A stretch of DNA of 63,691 nucleotides, counting the filler, from Intoshia linei (taxonomy: Eukaryota; Animalia; Orthonectida): NCBI GenBank assembly GCA_001642005.1. It is 10 parts of 10 records of this genome, joined end to end, with 100 filler letters (N's around TTAATTAATTAA, not from the genome) between each part and the next. Parts side by side here need not be neighbours in the genome. Positions count along the whole stretch, not along the records: positions 29,838 to 40,859 come from LWCA01001227.1; 9 more parts are not named here. One strand, 5' to 3'. This document shows, in pieces, positions 27,712 to 43,100 of the stretch; position 1 is the stretch's first letter; every line of letters starts with the position of its first letter. The position numbers and the translations under genes were made by a program. Under the pieces are notes generated by a model. That model was not told the DNA's origin, ran no database searches, and saw nothing but the letters and a program-made list of their open reading frames with translations.

Positions 27712-30700
27712 TATTTTTATTTTATATTAACATTAGTAAAAATATTGTACAATATTGATTTAAATTGTGAACATATATTCTAATATTGAACCAAAATTAC
27801 TTAACATAAAATTATAAAATAATATAAAAATTATTATTATTAATTTGTTCAAATATACTTTGGCAGTTTTGTGATCCAAAATATAAACTGCACTCGTATT
27901 ATTAATTTCAAGATCTGGTCCTTTTTGTAAAACATCTATAATAATTGGTGGAATGTATTTAGTAGGTCCATGAATAACCCACTCTTCACCGGCAACTCTT
28001 TTTTTACCCTTAAAATAATTGAATAAATTAAAAATGAATATATAATATCATATAAAGTAAACGACCGACGTATGGTCTACAGATTTGCAACACTGTCGCA
28101 AGCACGATCCAAATCAAACTAAGATCGATATTTTGAATCGTGCTTTGGATCGTGTTAAAGAATTCTTATGACAACTAAAAGCTTTCAATAAGTAATTTAA
28201 TGGGATGTAAAATAAAAATGGTCCAATAATGTTTATCTTAAGAAAAGTTTTGACAATATTGCTGCATTTTACTCTCTACAACATCTATCGAACTTGAATG
28301 TCTGTGTGGGTTACCGTTTAATTAAAAAATTAAGAGTGTTAGAATTATAAAAACGCAAAATTTAATACATTTCATCAAATGATGCAGTATGACCAATTTA
28401 ATTCTCAAAAATTGAAACCTTAAAAAAAAACATGAATTTAAAAAATTAAAAAAATAATTTATAAAACTTACATAATCATCTAAAACTAACTAAAACATCT
28501 TTGTCGACAACATTAATTTTAGCTAACAATAAAATGGATTAATTGTAATTGAGAACATAAATAATTTTAACATTTGATAAAATTTCGTAAGGCATGACAA
28601 AATATATGCACGATCCGACCAGTTGATTAGACTTGTGAATATTATTTGAGTTTGTTTTCGGATTAAAGACATTACTGACATTTATATATTCATTATCTTT
28701 AATAACGCGCCATACGACTCGTCTAATAATCTAAAAAAATATTATACATAAATACAAACGAATAGATTTTAGTATAAAAATACCCGTTCATTTATAGAAG
28801 CGAAATAATATGATGTTATTTCATGAGTGATTTTCCAAATATCTTCAACTTTTCTATTAACTTTGAAAAATTTGTCGTATTTTTTTTTAAACAAAGTACG
28901 TTTAACACAAACTAAACAAATGTAAAATGTAATGGTACACTTACAGTTGGCTCCATAAAGGTAGTTTGAAATTTTTTGACTATCTTACAATTTTCGTCAT
29001 CCACATAATATAGATAATTATAATCTCTGTGAACACTCCAATTTTGACCACATTTTCGTTCAATTCCTTCATAATCAATAAAATCCGTTAGGACTTCCAA
29101 ATGCAAAACATCTGATATAGTCATAGTTTCAGGCAAAACGGATTCAGTAATAACCTCTTCATTTATGACTAGTGTGTACATGTTTAAAATGATATTTAAC
29201 CAAATTTGTCATATAATTTTAATAATTACCATCCTTAGTCAGCACGCCGTCGCTATTATAAACTTTGTACAGTACCCATGTATCATCAGTGTGTCTTTGT
29301 ACACCCAGAACATCAACCAGATCCCATCTTGCTTAAAGTCGAATTTTACGTTCTTTTGTTATTGTAGGATAGAATCTCGGTTTTAAAATCAGCTTTTCTC
29401 CGGAAGTTTCTCAGGAGTTTCTCTCCTGGTCAGATTACTCTTTGATATAAGGTACTTTGAAGGATTCCTTTTATTATAATAATCATTGTCCAACAAAATG
29501 ACATTTTTTTTTGCCTTTTTTTGAAATTTTTTTTATTACTAATGTTAGAATATCTAACGATAAAGACATCATCGTAAAAATTGTTTTGATTCTATTTCAA
29601 ATGAACCAATTATGAAAATTTAAATAACCCTTATTTTTGTAAATTTAACTTAATTTTTTTAATATATACCTTAAATAACATTCAAATAAATTAGTTTATA
29701 TATTTTTTGTTTATCAATAGATAATATTTTGTAATATNNNNNNNNNNNNNNNNNNNNNNNNNNNNNNNNNNNNNNNNNNNNTTAATTAATTAANNNNNNN
29801 NNNNNNNNNNNNNNNNNNNNNNNNNNNNNNNNNNNNNAATTATTATCATTGTGATTGTAATTTGATGCGTATGAACATATCAAAATTTGCCTAGTTAAAA
29901 AATAATCGCCCTAGTAATAAGTTAATTTTATTATCAATTGTTTTGTGAAATCTTAATTTTGGAAAGTTTAAAAATATTTAGACAGTGCAAAACTTTTATT
30001 TATACTGTAATCCTTTGAAACCACGAAACATTGAAGACATTCATTATGAAACGTTGCAACGTTTGGTTTTATTAACGTAGTGTCAATTCATTACAATCCC
30101 TTAAAAGTGTGTATTGTCTCTTTTTAGTCACCATTATAAATCTTAAAATAAAAAAAATTATGTAAATTAGAATGTGTTAATATGTATATTTAAAATAAAT
30201 TAATATTAGAGAGATGAATGGGACAAACACGGAAAATGTGCAGTAAAATTAAGAGCTTTAAATACAATGCACAAATATTTTGCATTTTCGATTGGTTTGT
30301 ATAAAGATCTCAATGTTTTGGGGTATGATTTTTCATTTTATAATACTGTATTCCTTCTCAATATCTCCAGTTTAAACGTGAACTTTATATACACAGTTTA
30401 TGGATTATATAAATATTTTTATTTGAACTGTTGACTTTCAAGTGGTCAATTCTCTTTAATTTGATGGATTTATTGAAAAAAAATATATATTAATATAATT
30501 TGAATCGGCAATATATGTATCTTACGATAGTGGTTCTGAACCGGGTGCATAATGAATTTTTGGTTGCACAGAATTATTGTCAATTTTTTTAAATTATATT
30601 AATAGATTAATTAATTTTTTTTTAAATGAGTCAAATTACATAAATTATATTTTTATTATCAACAAAAATAGAAGATATAAAATATAATTTCATTTTGTCA

Positions 30701-31591
30701 TTACTTAACGAAATAATTTTCTTTCATCAACTCTTTTTACATGTTCGTGTAAATAAAAAAATTTTATGTTTCGGATTACGTTTGCAGTAATAATTAATTA
30801 ATTTAATTAAAAACGTTGTTTGAGGACACACGTTAATAATAAACTATAAACCCATAAATGTACATTTGATTATTAGAAAATTGAACTCAGCCGGAATTAC
30901 TCCAAAATGCACATCTACTTACACGGTACATATTAATTCAAATATTGGTTAAATTTGCATATATTTAGATAATTCAACTCACTGCCGCATTGCCCTCTAA
31001 TGCGGTATTACTATGCCAAAAGCTTGTAATTACATTTTATAATTTAAATACAACGGTACAATAAATTATTCAGATTAGATTGAGACGGGCCGACATTTTC
31101 CCGGTCATACCCGTTAAGTAACTTAAATTTTTCGCTGATATTAATCTTTAAATCATGATCCATTTCCGCTCTAAGTAGCGATATACTAGCCATTGCAAAC
31201 AAACGCAATGGATGACAAGATATAAATAGAATTGAATATGAACCAATTACAAGATATATAATTATATATCCTAATTATAATTAATCCCATTGCCAGTTAA
31301 GATATTTTGAATAACTACTAATTATGAATTATTGTACTATGTTTTTCTGTTATACGTACATATTTATTTTTATTTTTGATATAGCAAGGTAAAGATTATT
31401 TAATTGGTATTCAATTTTGCGTTAAACTAAACTTGAGCCTAACCTGTCAAATGGATACTTCAACGATAAAAAACTTGTGCACTGCGCCGAACATTTATTT
31501 TGCCGACAAGAAATGCTAATGAACTCTAATTATTAAACTTTACTTTACAGCACTTATTATTATTAGTTTATTATTAATACACTCTCTAGAA

Positions 31592-31660
31592 CAGCCATTC
31601 TCAACGGGGTCTATGTGGACCCCTTAGGGTCTACAGCACTTTTTTGGGGGTCCATGAAAA
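31592..31660 (+). mobile_element. 5' end of the hAT MITE family seen at 13704
   Basis: CAGCCATTCTCAACGGGGTCTATGTGGACCCC preceded by a TCTAGA-containing site. Confidence 0.7.
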
Positions 31661-31805
31661 TTATATACATTTATTATATATTATAGACATTTTCAGTAAC
31701 ATAAAGTGGTTTTTAAAACATAGAGGCTTAGAAATACTAATATAAAACGTGAAAATCATGTAAAAGTAAATTACTTAGTGTTAAATTAAATTACTTACGC
31801 TGAGA

Positions 31806-32470
31806 TTAGGAAATTTTTTTTAATGATGGTAATACCTTTGGTAATCCATTGTTATTGTATTGTCTATTCAATTCACATAAAAATTGTTTAACCAATCCAA
31901 GTTTTATATGAAGTGGTGGTAAAATTATTTTGTTTTTATTTATTAATAGAGCATGTATATTATATTTATTAGTATCCTTACTCTGCCGGTTATGCCATAT
32001 ATATTTTAAATAATGGTATGATGATTTTCGTGAGTCAAAATGACATAGGAAGCACTGATATTTAATATATCCACTTTGAAACCGACACACAATGTTTAAA
32101 ACCTTTAAATCGCAGGAAAGAGACCATTAATGCTGTGAATAATTAATTAACGAGAATATTATTTTCAGATTTGCGTATGATTTGGTCATAGTTATTGAGT
32201 ATAAAAGAGGTATAGTTTTATATTGATTTTTATGATAAATTAGACAACACTTCACATTTATGGTTGATGAATCGATGAAGAGTCACTTGATATATATAAA
32301 ACGTTAAGTTCTTTCATGAGACCCAAAATATTAATATAATAAACTGCATCATTGTTTTTTTGGAAAAATTTTAAAAATACATCTCCACGATGTCTATGAT
32401 TCGTCGAAAAAACTACACCATATCACTTGTCTAATTTTTTAAGATTAGAAACCAAATACTCAGAGTTACC
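31806..32470 (-). mobile_element. Degenerate Chapaev3-like (CMC) transposase
   Basis: LFIDSS...WSLSCDLKVL..FQSGYIKYQCFLCHFDSR...ILPPLHIKLGLVKQF, with stops. Family label is from recalled motifs. Confidence 0.75.
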
Positions 32471-33270
32471 CGTCTTAGAATTTTATAAAGCCCACATTTC
32501 AATTACAATTTTTTCGGGAGTGCTCGCAAACTAAATTTCAACCTCCTAAACTCACATCTTATGGGTCAAAAACCCAAATTGTCCTTTTTTTTGAAAATCT
32601 TTACTACAGCCATGTCAAACTTGGGTCCAGAGGGCCGTATACGGCTCATTTAAAATTTAAGTGCGGCCCGCCGTGAATTTGTATATGTATATATTATATA
32701 ATATTTACATTATTAAATATTCCAAATTGAATAGTTTATCATTTTCAGACTTAAACTCCATATAGATCTACATCAACCTCCTAAACTCACATCTTATGGG
32801 TCAAAAACCCAAATTGTCCTTTTTTTTGAAAATCAAACAAGTTGGAGAATTTAAAAAAATATACGCTGATATGAATTTTATAATCATAAACATTATCATA
32901 AATTTAAATTTAAAAAAACTATATCTTCAGGGCCAAAACCACAAATTACCCTTCTTTTTTCAAGACAACAGCCCTAGAATTTAAAAAAATTTACAGATGG
33001 TACAGTTGTATCCTGTTAACACGCATAAAAAATTTCAATCCGAATAAGTAACGACTTCATGGTCAAAAAAGTATTTTAGTATTAATATATTTTTTTCCGA
33101 GATATTTTATTAAAACAAAAAATGTGAAATAATTAACAGTCCGAAAATAAAAAAAAAAATTAATTTGATAAAGCTTATTCCAGTTGATATAAATACAAAA
33201 GTTCAACCGAGAAATCCACGCATTTCCGATGAAAAATAATTTTTAATATATTATCAACCAATATTATCCA
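32470..33270 (+). mobile_element. Helitron-like family internal segment, interrupted at 32600-32772
   Basis: High similarity to 7300-7700 and 56490-57050. Confidence 0.7.
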
Positions 33271-33468
33271 TATATAATAGATTTAAATACTAAATCTAAC
33301 TATCATTGATTATTAAAATGGTGACATGAACTGTAATTGATAATGTTGATTAAACAGACTAGCCTCATTTAGTATATTATCATAAATGGTTTACTGACAT
33401 AAATAAACATTCTACAACTTCATATTAAATAAACGTATCCTATATATTTTGCAACAGAAAAGTATAAA

Positions 33469-36400
33469 ATGATGTCTATACGTTTTACCATATCATTAAT
33501 TTTGTTTTCTATTCTGGTAGTATGCAGTGGTATGTTTATTTTATCATTAACTGTTAATTTTTGAAGTCAATGAAATACCATTTTTAAATTCAATATCAAA
33601 TTTTTTGAAATGACTAAAAATACAATTTTTAAATTTAAAAATCAAATGGGTGTTTCAATAGAAATAAAAATATTCATAAACCGTCTATAAAACTAAATAA
33701 ATAAATGAAATTTAAATATATTATTTGAATTGTTACATTCGTAAATCATAAGATGCGTTTGGCACAATTATGAACTGAAGGAACTTGGGATAATAACTTT
33801 AAAAAGAAAAATTAATGGTGTATTCCATTAATGTTATATATATAACATTAATGGAATACACATATAATATATGTATGTTACTAAGTGATTATTTTTAGCT
33901 AAAACTGTAAAGAAACAGGAAGGTTTTCATTTAATATCGTTGACATTACATTTTAATTACTATAATATTATGTAATTATATATTAACACTATCTGTGTTG
34001 TAAGGTCTCACATTTATATGAAAAATACATTATTCACAATGTACCTGTTCCTGCACGGAATAGCTAAAAATTTAAAATAAAATAGTATTTTTGTGGTACA
34101 AAAAATAAAAAAAATTGATCTACACGACTCTAAGTGAAATGGTATACAGTTAGTTTTCAATTTTCCCGCAGCAAACATTAAATTTACTGGAAAAAAAGAT
34201 TTAAATTCAAATTTTTTTAACCTTTGAATTTCTTACATAAACTTAATGTTAATCATTTTAATTGATTAACGTTACTTGATATTACAATTTATTCATATCA
34301 CATAATTATCTCTTTTTTGTATGTTATAATTAATTGTGAACTATATGCCTATATAAGCATTGATTATTATAATTATTATTTATTATAAGCCTTATATCAT
34401 TTCAGATACAAAATGAAAATAATTTCATATTAGATAAGAAACAGTCAATACTAAATGAGAATATATAGAATACTGAATTCTAACTTATTAAGTATTATTA
34501 TAAACAGTACATTATTATGTAAGTAATCCTTATTTATATAATATGCTACGCAATATTTGTTTGTGTGTGTCTCTGTGTGTGTTACCGTTTATTTCAATAA
34601 CTATCAGTCTTAGAATTTTATAAAGGCCACATTTCAATTACAGTTTTTTCCAGAGGTGTTAGCAAAATAAATTTCAACCTCCCAAACTCACATTTTTCAA
34701 GTCAAAAACTCCAATTATCTTTTTTTTTTGAAAATCAAACGAGTTGGAGAATTGAAAACAATATATACTCTAATACGGATTTTAAAATCATCAATTTTAG
34801 TTTAAAAAAATATATCTTCAGGGCCAAAACCTCAAATTACCCTTTTTTTTTTTAATGAAAACAGCCATAGAATTTCAAAAAATTTCAATTTAATTAAGTG
34901 ACGACTTCACGGTCAAAAATGCATTTTAGTATTCATATATTTTTTTTCCGAAATATTTTATTAAAACAAAATATGTGAAATANATTGAATAGTTTATCAT
35001 TTTCAGACTTAAACTCCATATAGATCTACATATATGTAGATCAGTGACATGATTAAAAGCATGCTTATTAAATAATGATAATTAACAATGAATTCTAAAT
35101 TTGTATTAATACATGCGATCCATCTCAAATTAAAATTCTAGTTTTATCATTTGAAGATTAATTATAAAAAATCAATCTTGCACAATGAATACAAAACTAT
35201 TTAAAAAAAAATTCCAGGATAGAATTATAATGACGAAATAAGAACTCGCCAATTTTACTCTGTAACCGACGACGCTAATTATTTCTATTATCTTTTGAAT
35301 AATCTTAGCATCGCTGACGGAAAAATTTTTTCAAAAATAAAAAAAACCATGGCCGCTCGAATTCAAAACATATTTACGATTTTTTTCTCGATTGCGATTT
35401 TTACAGTTCGCTAAAATATTCAACTCAAAACAAATCTCTGAGCCAATACGTGAATTTATATTACGTCTCAATGTAAAATTCAAAATTTCTGAATTTGATA
35501 GTTGAAGATATTGAACTATACAAATATGTAACCCTAATGGGTGTCAAAAACTGGAGATTTGGAGTTATAATCAAATTCAAAAATAAATTTGACGAAATTT
35601 GCCTGTTTAAATTTTATCACTATTTTTCGTAACCATTCAATAATTTGATAAAATTCGCAATTAAAATAGTAGCTATATTTGTCTGTACATGGGTATGAGG
35701 GTGTCACATTTTTTCGAAAATTTTAGAATTTGATGAATGGTTAGTACTAACTGTGTGTATTTTTAAAAAACAAACTCTATAACATAATCAAAAACGACTA
35801 AAAATAGATATTCGCTGTGCGTTTAACATTTTAAATAAACGATTACAAATCTTATAGTAAAATTATATTATCATTTTACTTTTTTTTAAAAACAGTGTTA
35901 TAGTGAATTGTCATGGTGTACAGAGTATTGTATTAATCACCGTTTTTAACTAAACATCTTACTGTTTTAATTTTCATTTTAGTTGTCTTAGTTCGATTTT
36001 TATCAATAATTGAATTTCTTAAATTTTGTGTATAAGTGAAAAAAAATTTAGAAAATTCAATAGCCACACATATAGTCATACATAATAGTCAAACGTATAG
36101 TTACAATTCATGATTTAAGCACTGTTCAGCTCATATTTCATCATAAAACAATTATATTTATTGTGTAGTTATTATTTTTATCCACATTTGACATTTTGAT
36201 ATGAACGTTAGAATATATTTGTGAGGTAATTTTCTACCCCACTCGAGTAGTTACGTGTTAAAAAATATAAGGTGAACGGATTGCCAGTAGATCCAGTAGA
36301 TTTCCATTGGAAAAAGTTCAATTATTTTTCTACTACTACTGATTACCGAAAGAAATGAATCTTACTATCAATTTAAAAATTAATTTTCAGTTATCTCAAA

Positions 36401-38692
36401 ATATAAATTTAATTTTATCAAAATTGCCAATGCGCTACCTTGAATGACGCATCGCGCCACGTGTGGCGCATGTGCCATAGGTTGGCCACCCCGCGTGTAA
36501 ACGAATTTGATTAAGAATACAAAATAAATAAAATTATTTTTTGCACCCATTTTGGGAACCATTCATTTATTTATTTAGTTAAAAGTGGTAATAATTTAAT
36601 AATTATTAATTATATTAAATTATAGTGATCAATTATCACTGATAATACTGAGATAAATATATACATTTGTATTTTACTTATATTTTTTTATTATAATATT
36701 CAAATTTCGTTTGTTTGTGTATCCATACCAGGGGTTAGAAACTTTACATCTCGTGAGACACTTTTTTATATCAAAAAATTCTAGGTTAAAAGAAGGTTAA
36801 GGAAAGGTTAAAATTTAAAGTTCTAGCCATTTTTTTAAAAATTTCTAATATATTTTCAGATTTGGGTTAATTAATAAAATTCGTAGATTTATTGATCGCC
36901 ATATATTTCGTACATTTAATATTATATCTCCATAAAGGTGACAACTTGTCCAAAAAGTGGTCACTTTTCGAGAGTTTACTGTATTTATTTTTTTTTTAAT
37001 TTTAAAAAAAATTGTAATTTAGGTTTTTAACCCTGATGCATTCACTTTTGGAGAATAAAACATAGATATAAACATAATATGTGAAAAAATCTATTCTAAA
37101 TTGGGATTTTTAAATTTTAAGATTGTCATTTTTTAAATAATAGGTAAACACACAGATATTCAAATTGTAACTATGCTCGCATTTATAAATATTATTTTAT
37201 ACAACTGATTTATCTGTTCCCATTATTTTTACATCATTTAGCCTGTAAATTTTAATAAATAGTGATTATTAAAACTGTATTTGGACATATTCATTTCTAT
37301 ATACATATTTACCATAATATTTTAATATAATTGTTATTCTAGTGAGTATATAATTTATTGCATTATATATTATATGCAATTACATGCATGTAAAAATAAA
37401 AAATTATCTTCTTATATTATACAATAGTTCGTATATTAAAATTATAAATATGACTTTTAGAAATTTTATTTTATTCATTCATAATATTACTTCAGTTTGT
37501 AATTACTAATTAAAATAAAAATTTGATATTGAATATGGCTAATGGCATATTCAATTTAAATATGTAAAGTGAATGGGGTGAATATTAGTTTATCAGTTTT
37601 TAAAGTTAATCTGAATTTGCTGAAATTCACCTTGAACAGATGTACTATTATTATATTCATTATATTAACTCTAACACTCAAAAAATATAAAATTAGTTGG
37701 TAAATATTAATTTATATATACCAAAAAATGTACTTTTCCATACTTTTACACATCTTAACGTCCCATTCAAATCTAGTTTAATGCATACTTTAATTGGATT
37801 ATTTACACAATTATTTACAGTAGATTAGACTCCAAACGAACGGGAACATGTATACTTTTAAACGATGAATTTCCACATTGTAAAATTATTGAAAATAGCA
37901 AATTAATTTCGATTGGACACTTTCCAATGTCTATATAATTAAATTATAATTTAGGAAGTATTTTTATTAATATTTAAAAATTTCCACATTTACGCTTGTT
38001 GTAAATTTGCTTTTCAAATATTTTTGTGGTCTTTCCAACATTAACCAATGTTATAAAATTAATAATTGCAACAGGATACCTAAATGACTTGTATAATCAT
38101 CCTTTCTCTGAAGCAAAATTACATTATAGTTGGTAAGATATGTATTATTTGCAATAATGTATGTAGTTTAATTTATCATGCTAGCAAACGTTGTCACTGA
38201 AATGTATTTATATTATAAATAAAATTGATCAATTTATATATTGTACTGCCTTTTATTTTTATAATAAACATAATAAATAAGGATGATATTAAAATTTGTA
38301 AAACAACGAAATATTCAAATCGTATAATAATATGATATGATAGGTATAAATGAAAAGATGAAAAGTCAGGGATGGATAGCTGGCATTTTATGGCCAAATT
38401 GTTAAAATAGTTAATTTTACATCATTAATGATGAACAGATTGACAAAAATGTTAAATAAGATTCTTATCTTAAATAAGCTAAATATTGATTCTAAATATC
38501 AATAATAATGATTATTATAATTATATACTTATCTAGGAAGTAATTATTTTTCTGGATAACTAATGTTTTACATTATATGAATTAATTATATTCATAAAGC
38601 AAGTAAATTTTATTTACATTAAATGTTAGTATATTAATATATGAATAAATTAAAAATGTTTATTTTAGAAGGTATATAATATTGAAGATTAG
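33469..38692 (+). CDS. Candidate secreted micro-exon gene: signal-peptide exon 33469-33529, 24-nt exon 33899-33922, then a run of 2-21-nt exons at 36860-38671
   Basis: MMSIRFTISLILFSILVVCS followed by G|GTATGT; ttttag-24nt-GT exon; ten AG-NNN-GTA motifs at 37242-38671; at least one stop-free spliced path exists. Exact exon set is not resolvable from DNA alone. Confidence 0.5.
34527..34982 (+). mobile_element. Helitron-like 5' portion
   Basis: A|TCCTTATTTATATAATATGCTACGC...TTTGTTTGTGTGTGTCTCTGTG start; body shared with the 7213 copy. Confidence 0.7.
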
Positions 38693-38862
38693 AAAAAAAA
38701 TGGCTACAAAGACTTATTAAAATAATTTAATTATTTCACTTAATTTTTTGATGAATGTATAATATTTGAAAGGGAAGATGTAATGACATCGTCATATCAT
38801 TAATCCTTAATTTAACTTTATAATAACTTTATTTAGTTTTAAAATAATATTTTAATGTATAT

Positions 38863-40180
38863 TAGGGCTGTTCTTTTTTTACAAAAATTGATTTTTGCTA
38901 TAAATACCCTATACCACGGTAAAGAGGGTACTTGAAAACCCCTATAAAATATATTTTTAGAAAAATGTACCGTAAAAACATTAAGCTATTTTACTTTTTA
39001 AGGTTTTCTCGCGCTTTTCCCCCTTTTTCTTAAACGGTGCCAATGATTTTATTTTAAACTTGGATACGATGAATGTACGACTCACTAAGACATATACCAA
39101 ATTTGGAGTGAAAAAATGAATATTTAACTTCACAGAGTGTTTTTTCCATAAAAAGGGGTTTTTGTAATATTGGTCAAATATAAAAATTCCAAAATTTATA
39201 ATTACAAAAATAATAACTGTGCAAGTTTGTGTGTGTAATTATTAAATTGGGTTATTTACGTTTTAAATACATTTTAATGAAAAAAAGTAATATAAACTCT
39301 CTAGAAGCCGAGCTAAAAAATTAAACTGTATTTATTCTAATCGATTAATTTTTATAAAAATTGTATGACGATATGTAAAATGTGACGCAGATTCGTGACA
39401 GGTGAGTGTAGTTTTTTTGTATTATTAGTTTCTGCGTTTAAATTAATTTAAATCACAAAAAATAACGAAAATACTTTATTATCTTCAAAAAATATATATT
39501 TTATGATTAATCATGGAAAAAATTATTAATGGTGTTGAAATTCAAAGTAATTTAAAATTGAAACGAATAATTCTGTTATTATAAAAATGAAATTAGTTTA
39601 TTAATTCACCAATAATTGTCTAATCTTTTTCAACCTCTTAATGTTAACTATCATTATCTGACGAAATGATCAAGCATTCCTTTAATGTTGTTTCTCCCAA
39701 TTTTAAGTTATTGAAGAATTATAAATCTTAGATTTGTTTATTCGTCAAATTGTTAAAAGTGCTAATTGTGTAATTTTAACAATTGTCTGGTTTTATTTAG
39801 TTTTTCCATTTATATTTGTCATTGATTTTGGTTTATTATATTAATCATTTTATTTCAGTAATATGGAAGTGAGGCTCGATATGCATGCCGATTGATAATA
39901 TATAAAATTATGTTGTTTAAAGTTCAATATAAAACTAAATTTTTGTAACTAAAAAATAATCTAAAATTTATAATATATGTAACCAAATGAATTATAATAT
40001 TACGCTAATTAACGACTAAGTTAAAAATAAGTATCACTTATTATATAGTATTATTAAGTTATTAATGGAATTCCGCTTAATGTTTTTTGAGAATTGAGAA
40101 TTTTTAATAACGGCATATTATTTTTCATATATCAGCATACTCTCTGCTCATGTGCTAATTTTTGTTTCTGAACAGCCCTA
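38863..40180. mobile_element. hATm-like non-autonomous element (1318 bp) with perfect 8-bp TSD ATGTATAT
   Basis: TIRs TAGGGCTGTTC / GAACAGCCCTA; ATGTATAT at 38855-38862 and 40181-40188; a related 5' end is at about 55290. Confidence 0.88.
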
Positions 40181-43100
40181 ATGTATATACAGTGAAACTT
40201 ATCCATGGAAAAGTTTATATAAAGTAAATATATCACGTTTTGTAATATCTACACATTTTTTATAGTACAGTTAAGTTTCGTTAGTAAAGACAAGTTTGGT
40301 AGATAACTTTTTGAAATGTTTTGTTAATAATGATTTATTTATTTTGTCATTCAAAATTGCAATTTTCTTTATAAAAAAGCTACATTTTTTTCTGATTTGA
40401 TTCTGATCATACAACACATTTATTCTCTATTCGCAAATATATAAATTAAATTGTAAATTTGTATATATATTTATTTATATTTTATATGTAGAATATTTTA
40501 TATTTTAGTTACATTTTATTACAAGTCATTTTTTATGACACTTATCACACTTATTTGTTATTCGATAAAGCAATTTATTCGATATTGCAATTTTTAATTT
40601 AAAATCGTTTGCGCATAAAGAGATTTCACAGTAAAACGTATTTATGGTCACACTAGTTATATGACACTTGCATAATTTATGTAATATTTAAATTAGTTGG
40701 TATATTATATTATAAAAAGTGTTAAACCATCTTTCTAAAATTACCATATTACATCAGTGGTTATTAACCGTGGGTGCATAATCAATTTTTGGGATGCACA
40801 GAGTTATTTTCAGTTTTTTTTAATTACATTAATAAAATAATTAGTTAAAAATTAATTTTNNNNNNNNNNNNNNNNNNNNNNNNNNNNNNNNNNNNNNNNN
40901 NNNTTAATTAATTAANNNNNNNNNNNNNNNNNNNNNNNNNNNNNNNNNNNNNNNNNNNNCGAGATATTCTTGTATTTAATAACGAGTGTATTTATAAACG
41001 AGAAACTACTGTAATTAGTTTTTAAAGTTTTTTTAATATATTTAATATATAAATATGCTCTATTTTGGCTTCTAACAAAATCTTCTAATGGCTATAACTT
41101 TTATTCTCATAGATGAAAAGTTTTAATATTTTAGAATATAATTTTATTCATATAGATCAGTGATGCCCAACCTGTCAATTGCAGGTGATTTTCTAGTCCA
41201 TCGCCAAAATTAGAATTAATTTTATATTTTAATAATATTCGTTATTAAAATGATATCTATTTTAATATTGATATATATAATATATTTTTAAGATTGTACA
41301 CATTTCAATAAATGCGATGTAACTTGTTTAAATCATTATCTAATAAGCATCAGGCATCATTGACTTAAGCATCATGAGATAATATTAATTGTTTTATTAT
41401 ATTCTACAGTAGTGTTTATCAACCGGTGTCTCAGTATATTTTAAAAGTCCAACGCCAAATTCTAAGAGTGCTATATAGAACTTCACTATCGATCAGTAAC
41501 ACCGGATTATTTGATTTTGATATTCAAACATTTTTATTTTAATTTGCAGAGTTTATTTGAAAAAACCAATCCACCATTAGAGATTTTAAACAAACGATTT
41601 ACCAATTTCACACTTCATATAATGTAATATAATAATAATATATCATATTTATTATGTGCAATGTTGAATTCCAAGTTGGAAATTCCAACTAACTTTAAAT
41701 CAAACACAGTGATTCCTAACCTTTTTCACTACAGCCCACCGCAGCGTCATAAAAATATTCCACCGCACCTTAAAATTTTTTGTTATACACTTATTACCTT
41801 ATATTCATGTGGAGAGGGCTAGGGGCCATATGGCCCAGGCCTATAATCATGAGGTCTACTTTTTTAATTTATTAAAAGGTAATGTTAGAAAAGTTCTTAA
41901 GAACACCAAAATTATCGTATAATAAAATGTTATATTAACAAGCCAGTTAGTTATTTTTAATTTTTAGATAATGAACGATGGATTAAGCAAGTATAGAAGT
42001 CCCATTTTTAAGAAATAATTTAATATACTATTGAATTATGTAGAATACGATAAAATGCGTTTTAAACACATTTAGTCATTTCTAGGCATCTTTCAAATGT
42101 CAATAAAAAACAACTCAGATCGGTTTGGTTCTGCTAAAACTTTCCAATAAATAAATCTGGATGGATGTAATCCATTGAATTTATCTGTAATCCTACTAAC
42201 CAATTATTTTATCCAATCATTAATGAGTGGTCAAAATTTAAAAGTCATTTTTTTCAAAAATCCCATTTAACCAAACTTTTAGATCAAAAATACTATATCT
42301 CATCCCTAAAGAAAAAACCTAATTTTACCAATCCTTAAAAAAAAACCACTTTTAACCATATTTTTCTGAAAAATCCCATTATCAAAAATTAATATTCTAA
42401 AAATAATATAATAATTTTAAATGAAAAATAATTCAAATTGTTCAGAAGGCCGCGCCAAATCCTCAATAAAGCCACACTTTCCGCACCTCCAGTATATCCT
42501 GTACTAATTACAGTCAATAATCAAACAAGTAATAAAATAGAATTTCTGTTACCCTATACAAAATGAATTTACAAAATTAACAGTCATAGAATTTACAAAA
42601 TCCTTTACTTATATAAAAATGAATGTCTGTGTGTAAGCATTTATTGAAAAAATTGAGTCGCAGAATTAAAAAAAACCCAATTTCTAATACAGTTTTTCCC
42701 AGAGCGTGTTTTAATCAATTTTTCAGTTTCAGAATTTAAGTCCTTCATGGTCAAACACCCAATTTCCCCATTTGTTAAAAAAAATTCAGCCCAAAATGTA
42801 ATAAAACACTCTAGAACGCGTTTTAAAATCATTAACATTGTCGTTAATATCAGCTTCAAATACGCATACCTTCATGGTTAAAACCCAAATTACCCTGTTT
42901 TAAAAATTAAACATATCTTAAAATTTTTTTAAACATAAATTCTGAGATACTTTCAAAAAGTTGTGTCTCAGTGGTGTTTATATTTCTACAAACTAATTCT
43001 TTCCATTTACTAAATACGTTCTCTATAGGGTTTGAAAATCATGGAGTAGGGTGCTAAAAATTCATTTCTGTGACCAGAATTTACAATTAAATTCACAATA

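Follow-up and report, generated by a model that had tools for sequence, protein, structure and literature searches.

A cluster of candidate 3-nt micro-exons in the orthonectid Intoshia linei and the small secreted-peptide gene it may encode

The locus and its neighbourhood

We analysed a window of 63,691 nt from the orthonectid Intoshia linei (assembly GCA_001642005.1), the window being the whole stretch of DNA, filler included, in which ten parts of ten records of this genome are joined end to end; all positions count along it. The locus of interest lies in the piece at 29838-40859 (record LWCA01001227.1). This piece is AT-rich, with a G+C content of 19–31% per 500 nt and ~24% overall, and it looks like invertebrate nuclear DNA carrying transposon fragments; Rfam and tRNA scans of it returned no match. 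On its plus strand, 1.43 kb (37242-38671) hold ten sites of the form AG-NNN-GT (an acceptor-like and a donor-like dinucleotide separated by exactly 3 nt), extended to GTA on the donor side in all ten and to YAG on the acceptor side in nine (Table 1). The preliminary description of this DNA had listed these ten acceptor–3 nt–donor sites, and every one of them is present. Successive sites are separated by gaps of 98, 82, 65, 198, 255, 172, 404, 60 and 66 nt, five of the nine falling between 60 and 98 nt. Compared with one another, the spacers have no similarity beyond the motif and are not repeats of each other, which bears out the earlier claim that they are non-repetitive. Since the motif is all that they share, it appears to have been maintained while the remainder was free to drift.

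Table 1. Candidate exons and associated signals at the locus (slashes mark putative splice junctions)
Feature	Position	Strand	Details
Candidate first coding exon	33469..33529	+	ATG; 61 nt = 20 codons + 1 nt; donor GTATGT
CCT, candidate 3-nt exon	37242..37244	+	tttag/CCT/gtaaat; preceding AG 86 nt 5'
TGA, candidate 3-nt exon	37343..37345	+	tctag/TGA/gtatat; upstream intron 98 nt, last 80 AG-free
TTC, candidate 3-nt exon	37428..37430	+	aatag/TTC/gtatat; 82-nt upstream intron without any AG
TTT, candidate 3-nt exon	37496..37498	+	ttcag/TTT/gtaatt; 65-nt upstream intron
2-nt exon of the preliminary description	37640..37641	+	aacag/AT/gtacta; flank scores at 25th–27th percentile
TTG, candidate 3-nt exon	37697..37699	+	attag/TTG/gtaaat; 57 nt AG-free upstream
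21-nt candidate exon of the preliminary description	37829..37849	+	GTATAC donor; flank scores at 43rd–53rd percentile
GAA, candidate 3-nt exon	37955..37957	+	tttag/GAA/gtattt; top leave-one-out acceptor flank score of the ten
TTG, candidate 3-nt exon	38130..38132	+	tatag/TTG/gtaaga; lowest flank score, sole +5 G donor
GAA, candidate 3-nt exon	38537..38539	+	tctag/GAA/gtaatt; 58 nt AG-free upstream
CAA, candidate 3-nt exon	38600..38602	+	aaag/CAA/gtaaat, AAG acceptor; 60-nt upstream intron without internal AG
AAG, tenth site	38669..38671	+	tttag/AAG/gtatat
ATTAAA, possible polyadenylation signal	38716..38721	+	45 nt past the last site; inferred

A candidate first coding exon lies 3.7 kb 5' of the array on the same strand, with transposon-like repeats between the two, and we found no stepping sites like those of the array within this 3.7-kb stretch. 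Its translation has a signal-peptide-like pattern (a basic n-region, a 13-residue hydrophobic core and V-C-S at -3..-1), and the exon ends 1 nt into a codon, which places the following intron in phase 1. When both strands of the 11-kb piece were scanned, no other ATG exon combined a strong signal-peptide-like sequence with a donor. Judged by its position, the array probably belongs to the gene of this exon. A search with the exon-1 ORF (31 aa) among 1.8 billion protein representatives returned one unrelated repetitive protein, a 20-residue match being near the limit of detection, and a metagenome pattern scan for the 3' end of the exon gave 0 matches. Dispersed-repeat copies of ~450–650 nt, with blocks 76–100% identical, occur on the plus strand at 32467-33121 and 34602-35031 (one ambiguous base, N, at 34983 within the latter) and form direct repeats on either side of the exon. 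In the intron just 3' of it, a palindrome at 33811-33868, with 29-nt arms that are 90% complementary and no loop, may represent either a small inverted-repeat transposon or an element able to form a hairpin.

At the other end of the array, stop codons follow shortly after 38669-38671, within 8 codons in phases 0 and 1; for this reason the tenth site may mark a further 3-nt exon, or it may instead be the acceptor at which a short terminal exon begins.

Several further features were observed in the piece. An open stretch on the plus strand (30210-30323) encodes the conserved second active-site block of RNase T2 (D-E-W-D-K-H-G-K-C...) and ends at a GTATGA donor; it matches Pfam PF00445 (E=3e-6), and among solved structures its best relative is human RNASET2 (3t0o), at ~60% identity across 35 residues. 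A possible preceding RNase T2 exon lies at ~29982-30040 (C-N-P-L-K-P-R-N-I-E-D-I...) in another frame arrangement, and this may be an RNase T2 gene split by short introns, or a pseudogene. Downstream of the array, a strong consensus donor on the plus strand (39385-39410; gacag/gtgagt at 39402) precedes, by ~450 nt, a good acceptor (ttatttcag/) with an ATG (39850-39895, +). Another gene, separate from the array and in the same orientation, seems to begin in the region from 39385 to 39895. Short G+C-rich islands at 36420-36500, 30530-30570 and 40757-40805 are miniature inverted-repeat or SINE-like (e.g. ...gcgccacgtgtggcgcatgtgccataggttggccacccc...), the last two of them being related copies (...ggtgcataatgaatttttggttgcacaga...) near both ends of the piece.

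Enrichment of the motif and splice-like features of the sites

To the plus-strand counts over 37201-38720 (ten AG-N3-GT and nine YAG-N3-GTA), the other spacings from 0 to 12 offer no counterpart: each yields 0–1 YAG-Nk-GTA and 0–3, mostly 0–1, AG-Nk-GT. Spacing 0 in this region gives YAG/GTA once and AG/GT twice, and spacing 2 gives a single occurrence, which is background. On the minus strand of the same region, spacing 3 yields 0 YAG/GTA and 1 AG/GT, and the other 9.5 kb of the piece contain two YAG-N3-GTA on the plus strand. The enrichment in the array is ~30-fold, and it is specific to spacing 3 and to the plus strand.

Chance occurrence was assessed by simulation under Markov models (orders 1 and 3) of the whole 11-kb piece. 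Simulated sequences contained 2.7–3.1 YAG-N3-GTA per 11 kb and at most 4–5 per 1.5 kb, compared with the 9 observed; the chance expectation of ~0.5 put forward in the preliminary description was of the right order. When the maximum was taken over spacings 0–12 and both strands, a count of 7 was reached once in 1500 simulations and a count of 9 never. We conclude that the motif cluster is beyond chance, and these simulations rule out a chance cluster in AT-rich DNA. A tandem or dispersed repeat was also ruled out, the spacers being without mutual similarity, and transposon insertions with a 3-bp target-site duplication were rejected because neighbouring triplets differ.

The sequences around the sites were then compared with other AG and GT dinucleotides. 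In site order, the AG-free stretches 5' of the acceptors measure 86, 80, 81, 35, 57, 56, 16, 58, 59 and 39 nt, compared with a control median of 18 nt (735 AGs, both strands; Mann-Whitney p=3e-4); against the 36 other AGs within the array, the difference had p=0.0013. On the donor side, T occupies position +6 at nine of the ten sites, compared with 41% of other GTA in the piece (p=0.002), and A occupies position +3 at all ten AG-N3-GT sites, compared with about a third of GTs in the piece. The shortest gap between sites is 60 nt and none is smaller (p ~0.02 under uniform placement), a floor that is the expected effect of a minimum intron length. Leave-one-out scores of flank similarity to the array sites, from which the YAG and GTA cores were excluded, mostly exceed the 80th percentile. 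Read off the sequence, a CTAAC also lies ~21–25 nt 5' of the candidate exon at 37697. The AG-free zones, the +6 T and the minimum spacing are splice hallmarks on which the earlier reader had not selected, and they point to splicing.

Some features of the sites are nevertheless points against this reading. A G at donor position +5 is found at only one of the ten sites, whereas all three ordinary-looking donors in the piece carry it (33530 GTATGT, 30324 GTATGA and 39402 GTGAGT), and the exon-side donor positions of the array sites are non-consensus. The pyrimidine content 5' of the acceptors is barely raised, at 54% compared with a background of 50% (p=0.1). The weak pyrimidine tracts and the missing +5 G both count against splicing.

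Reading frames, a proposed splicing route and its alternatives

Entered in phase 1 from the signal-peptide exon, the ten triplets are open and read A-L-I-L-F-G-I-G-T-K (by hand). They are also open in phase 2, and phase 0 stops at the second triplet, TGA, which is a stop codon in that phase only. The conceptual products, of ~30–65 aa, are short, of low complexity and obtainable by several open paths, as any AT-rich DNA gives. The preliminary description had drawn a path through a 2-nt exon that switches phase and through a longer exon of 21 nt. We rejected the 2-nt exon and its phase switch because the flanks of this site are ordinary and, with the ten triplets already open in phase 1 (and in phase 2), no switch is needed; the site is probably a chance match. 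The 21-nt candidate, whose flanks are likewise ordinary, forms an island of relatively high G+C content; three AGs compete at its 5' side, and in unswitched phase 1 the candidate leads to a TGA at the next triplet (by hand). A path through these two exons is possible and is not favoured. We also observed, at 36938-36980 on the plus strand, a 43-nt candidate exon with splice-like flanks, a 51-nt AG-free stretch upstream and an internal inverted repeat (GTGACAACTT...AAGTGGTCAC). If used, this exon would shift phase 1 to phase 2, a phase in which the array can likewise be read without a stop.

On balance, we think it somewhat probable that each of the ten sites is a true pair of 3' and 5' splice sites, bounding a 3-nt, frame-preserving micro-exon of a plus-strand gene. 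The array of 3-nt micro-exons that had been proposed thus stands as the best explanation of the array statistics and of the splice hallmarks, with splicing itself predicted from the DNA sequence. The gene would most likely start with the signal-peptide exon and end shortly past 38669, near the ATTAAA at 38716. Introns between the triplets would be 60–404 nt long, five of the nine measuring 60–98 nt, and at such lengths splice-site recognition would take place across introns. U1 binding at a donor and U2AF binding at an acceptor just 3 nt away are hard to accommodate at the same time, which makes an ordered removal of introns probable. Removal would proceed from 5' to 3' in a recursive-like manner, most simply during transcription, with each ligation adding one triplet to the growing exon and freeing the next donor, at a footprint of 3 nt per step. 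The AG-free introns would agree with the use of the first AG downstream of the branch point. The predicted product is a secreted or membrane-anchored peptide of very small size, about ten codons of which would each be split by an intron.

In full, this reading has a coding body assembled from exons of one codon length each, with about ten consecutive 3-nt exons in phase 1, ordered recursive-like splicing and donors without +5 G; the product would be a tiny secreted or membrane peptide, perhaps occurring in combinatorial variants that differ by single residues. This combination is predicted from the sequence and held tentatively, with a confidence just short of even.

An unlikely alternative is that the spliceosome uses the sites but that the array is no part of the coding body of the signal-peptide gene. 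An untranslated region, a non-coding transcript or an intron of another gene might then contain it, and the triplets would serve as alternative, decoy or poison micro-exons (TGA is among them) or as stepping stones for stepwise removal. Such an array would have the same splice-like hallmarks as the codon-by-codon gene. It would be in keeping with a first exon tied to the array only by position across 3.7 kb of transposon-like DNA, with the lack of a favoured frame (phases 1 and 2 open, phase 0 meeting the TGA) and with weak donors, of which one in ten has +5 G. However, the phase in which the upstream signal-peptide exon ends is the symmetric one that matches the triplets, and no further candidate exon presents itself. 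The version with stepping stones meets further difficulties: stepwise removal is unneeded for gaps of 60–400 nt, the long 3.7-kb stretch is without such sites, and 3 nt would in any case stay behind in the RNA at each step.

We regard it as yet more doubtful that the array is a relic, a micro-exon gene that was once functional and is now unexpressed or mis-spliced. Transposon-like insertions between exon 1 and the array would fit such a history, the near-match to the motif at 37640, with 2 nt in place of 3, could have arisen by decay of a site, and no exon-1-like protein was found among the 1.8 billion representatives, a weak indication given that a 20-residue match is at the edge of detection. 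Yet the AG, the exact 3 nt and the GTA are intact at ten of ten sites while the spacers have diverged beyond recognition, a pattern that speaks for selection on the motif to the present or until recently. Least probable among these explanations is a motif unrelated to splicing (a spaced protein-binding site YAG-N3-GTAWWT or an unrecognised repeat property) or a chance cluster. The weak pyrimidine tracts and the missing +5 G would suit a non-splicing motif, but a DNA-binding motif predicts neither the upstream AG-free zones, nor the 60-nt minimum spacing, nor GT-A..T. No repeat structure was found, Rfam and tRNA models gave no match, and a chance cluster is excluded by the simulations.

Comparison with known micro-exon systems

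The exons of schistosome micro-exon genes (MEGs) measure ~6–36 nt, whereas the candidate array here is a run of 3-nt exons. MEGs open with a signal-peptide exon, after which tiny symmetric exons (multiples of 3 nt) account for most of the coding sequence; they encode secreted or membrane-anchored proteins, tolerate exon skipping without loss of frame and were reported as restricted to flatworms (PMC4350168). The locus would resemble them in its putative signal-peptide first exon and its symmetric tiny exons, both of which are candidates here.

Aphid bicycle genes and other sternorrhynchan micro-exon effector genes (Korgaonkar et al. 2021; Stern and Han 2022) are described as having an N-terminal signal peptide and 5–25 micro-exons; nearly all internal exons begin at codon position 2, and long introns also occur (PMC9168663; bioRxiv 10.1101/2020.10.28.359562). 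The same codon-position-2 phase would be set here by the 61-nt exon 1 and kept by the 3-nt exons, a likeness conditional on a link between exon 1 and the array. The aphid-like look of the locus comes solely from its base composition, its intron size and this phase pattern. In contrast, paired CYC motifs define the bicycle family, and neither the array triplets nor the 21-nt candidate encode a Cys in any phase. Because the triplets cannot encode CYC motifs, the locus falls outside the bicycle family on that feature. Bicycle genes also average ~17 exons, and the conceptual product here looks far too short. The excerpts available for these genes report no runs of 3-nt exons (PMC9168663; bioRxiv 10.1101/2020.10.28.359562).

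Single 3-nt exons have been documented in RPS24 (PMC12207440) and MAP4K5 (PMC8632122), in mouse by MicroExonator (PMC7821500) and in plants (PMC8831610). These cases from vertebrates and plants show that the spliceosome is able to include a 3-nt exon. They are isolated, however, each lying between normal exons, whereas ten would follow in a row here as the coding body. A full-text literature search, aphid micro-exon genes included, retrieved no description of an array of consecutive 3-nt exons.

Ratchet points have a spacing of 0, contribute no nucleotide to the mRNA and break up introns tens of kb long. These zero-nucleotide recursive sites are said to have been described in long introns of Drosophila by Burnette in 2005 and Duff in 2015. 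Like the sites of the array, they juxtapose an acceptor and a donor that are used successively, and the ordered re-splicing proposed here would be the same in kind. They differ in spacing (0, compared with exactly 3 at ten of ten sites) and in their steps, which in the array would span 60–404 nt and leave 3 nt each. Classic zero-nucleotide recursive sites were ruled out as an explanation of the array by this spacing of 3.

Single 3-nt exons are rare curiosities that aligners and gene finders miss. If the codon-by-codon reading is true, exon length can repeatedly shrink to one codon within one gene, and pairs of splice sites 3 nt apart are usable serially. The locus would then be an unprecedented extreme of micro-exon gene architecture and a test bed for acceptors and donors 3 nt apart. 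Annotation pipelines may in that case miss a whole class of small secreted-peptide genes, for which strand-specific clusters of YAG-N3-GTA at intron-like spacing would provide a search signature in this genome and its relatives. It would also link micro-exon effector genes, as found in parasites and in sap-feeding insects, with an extreme of splicing mechanism.
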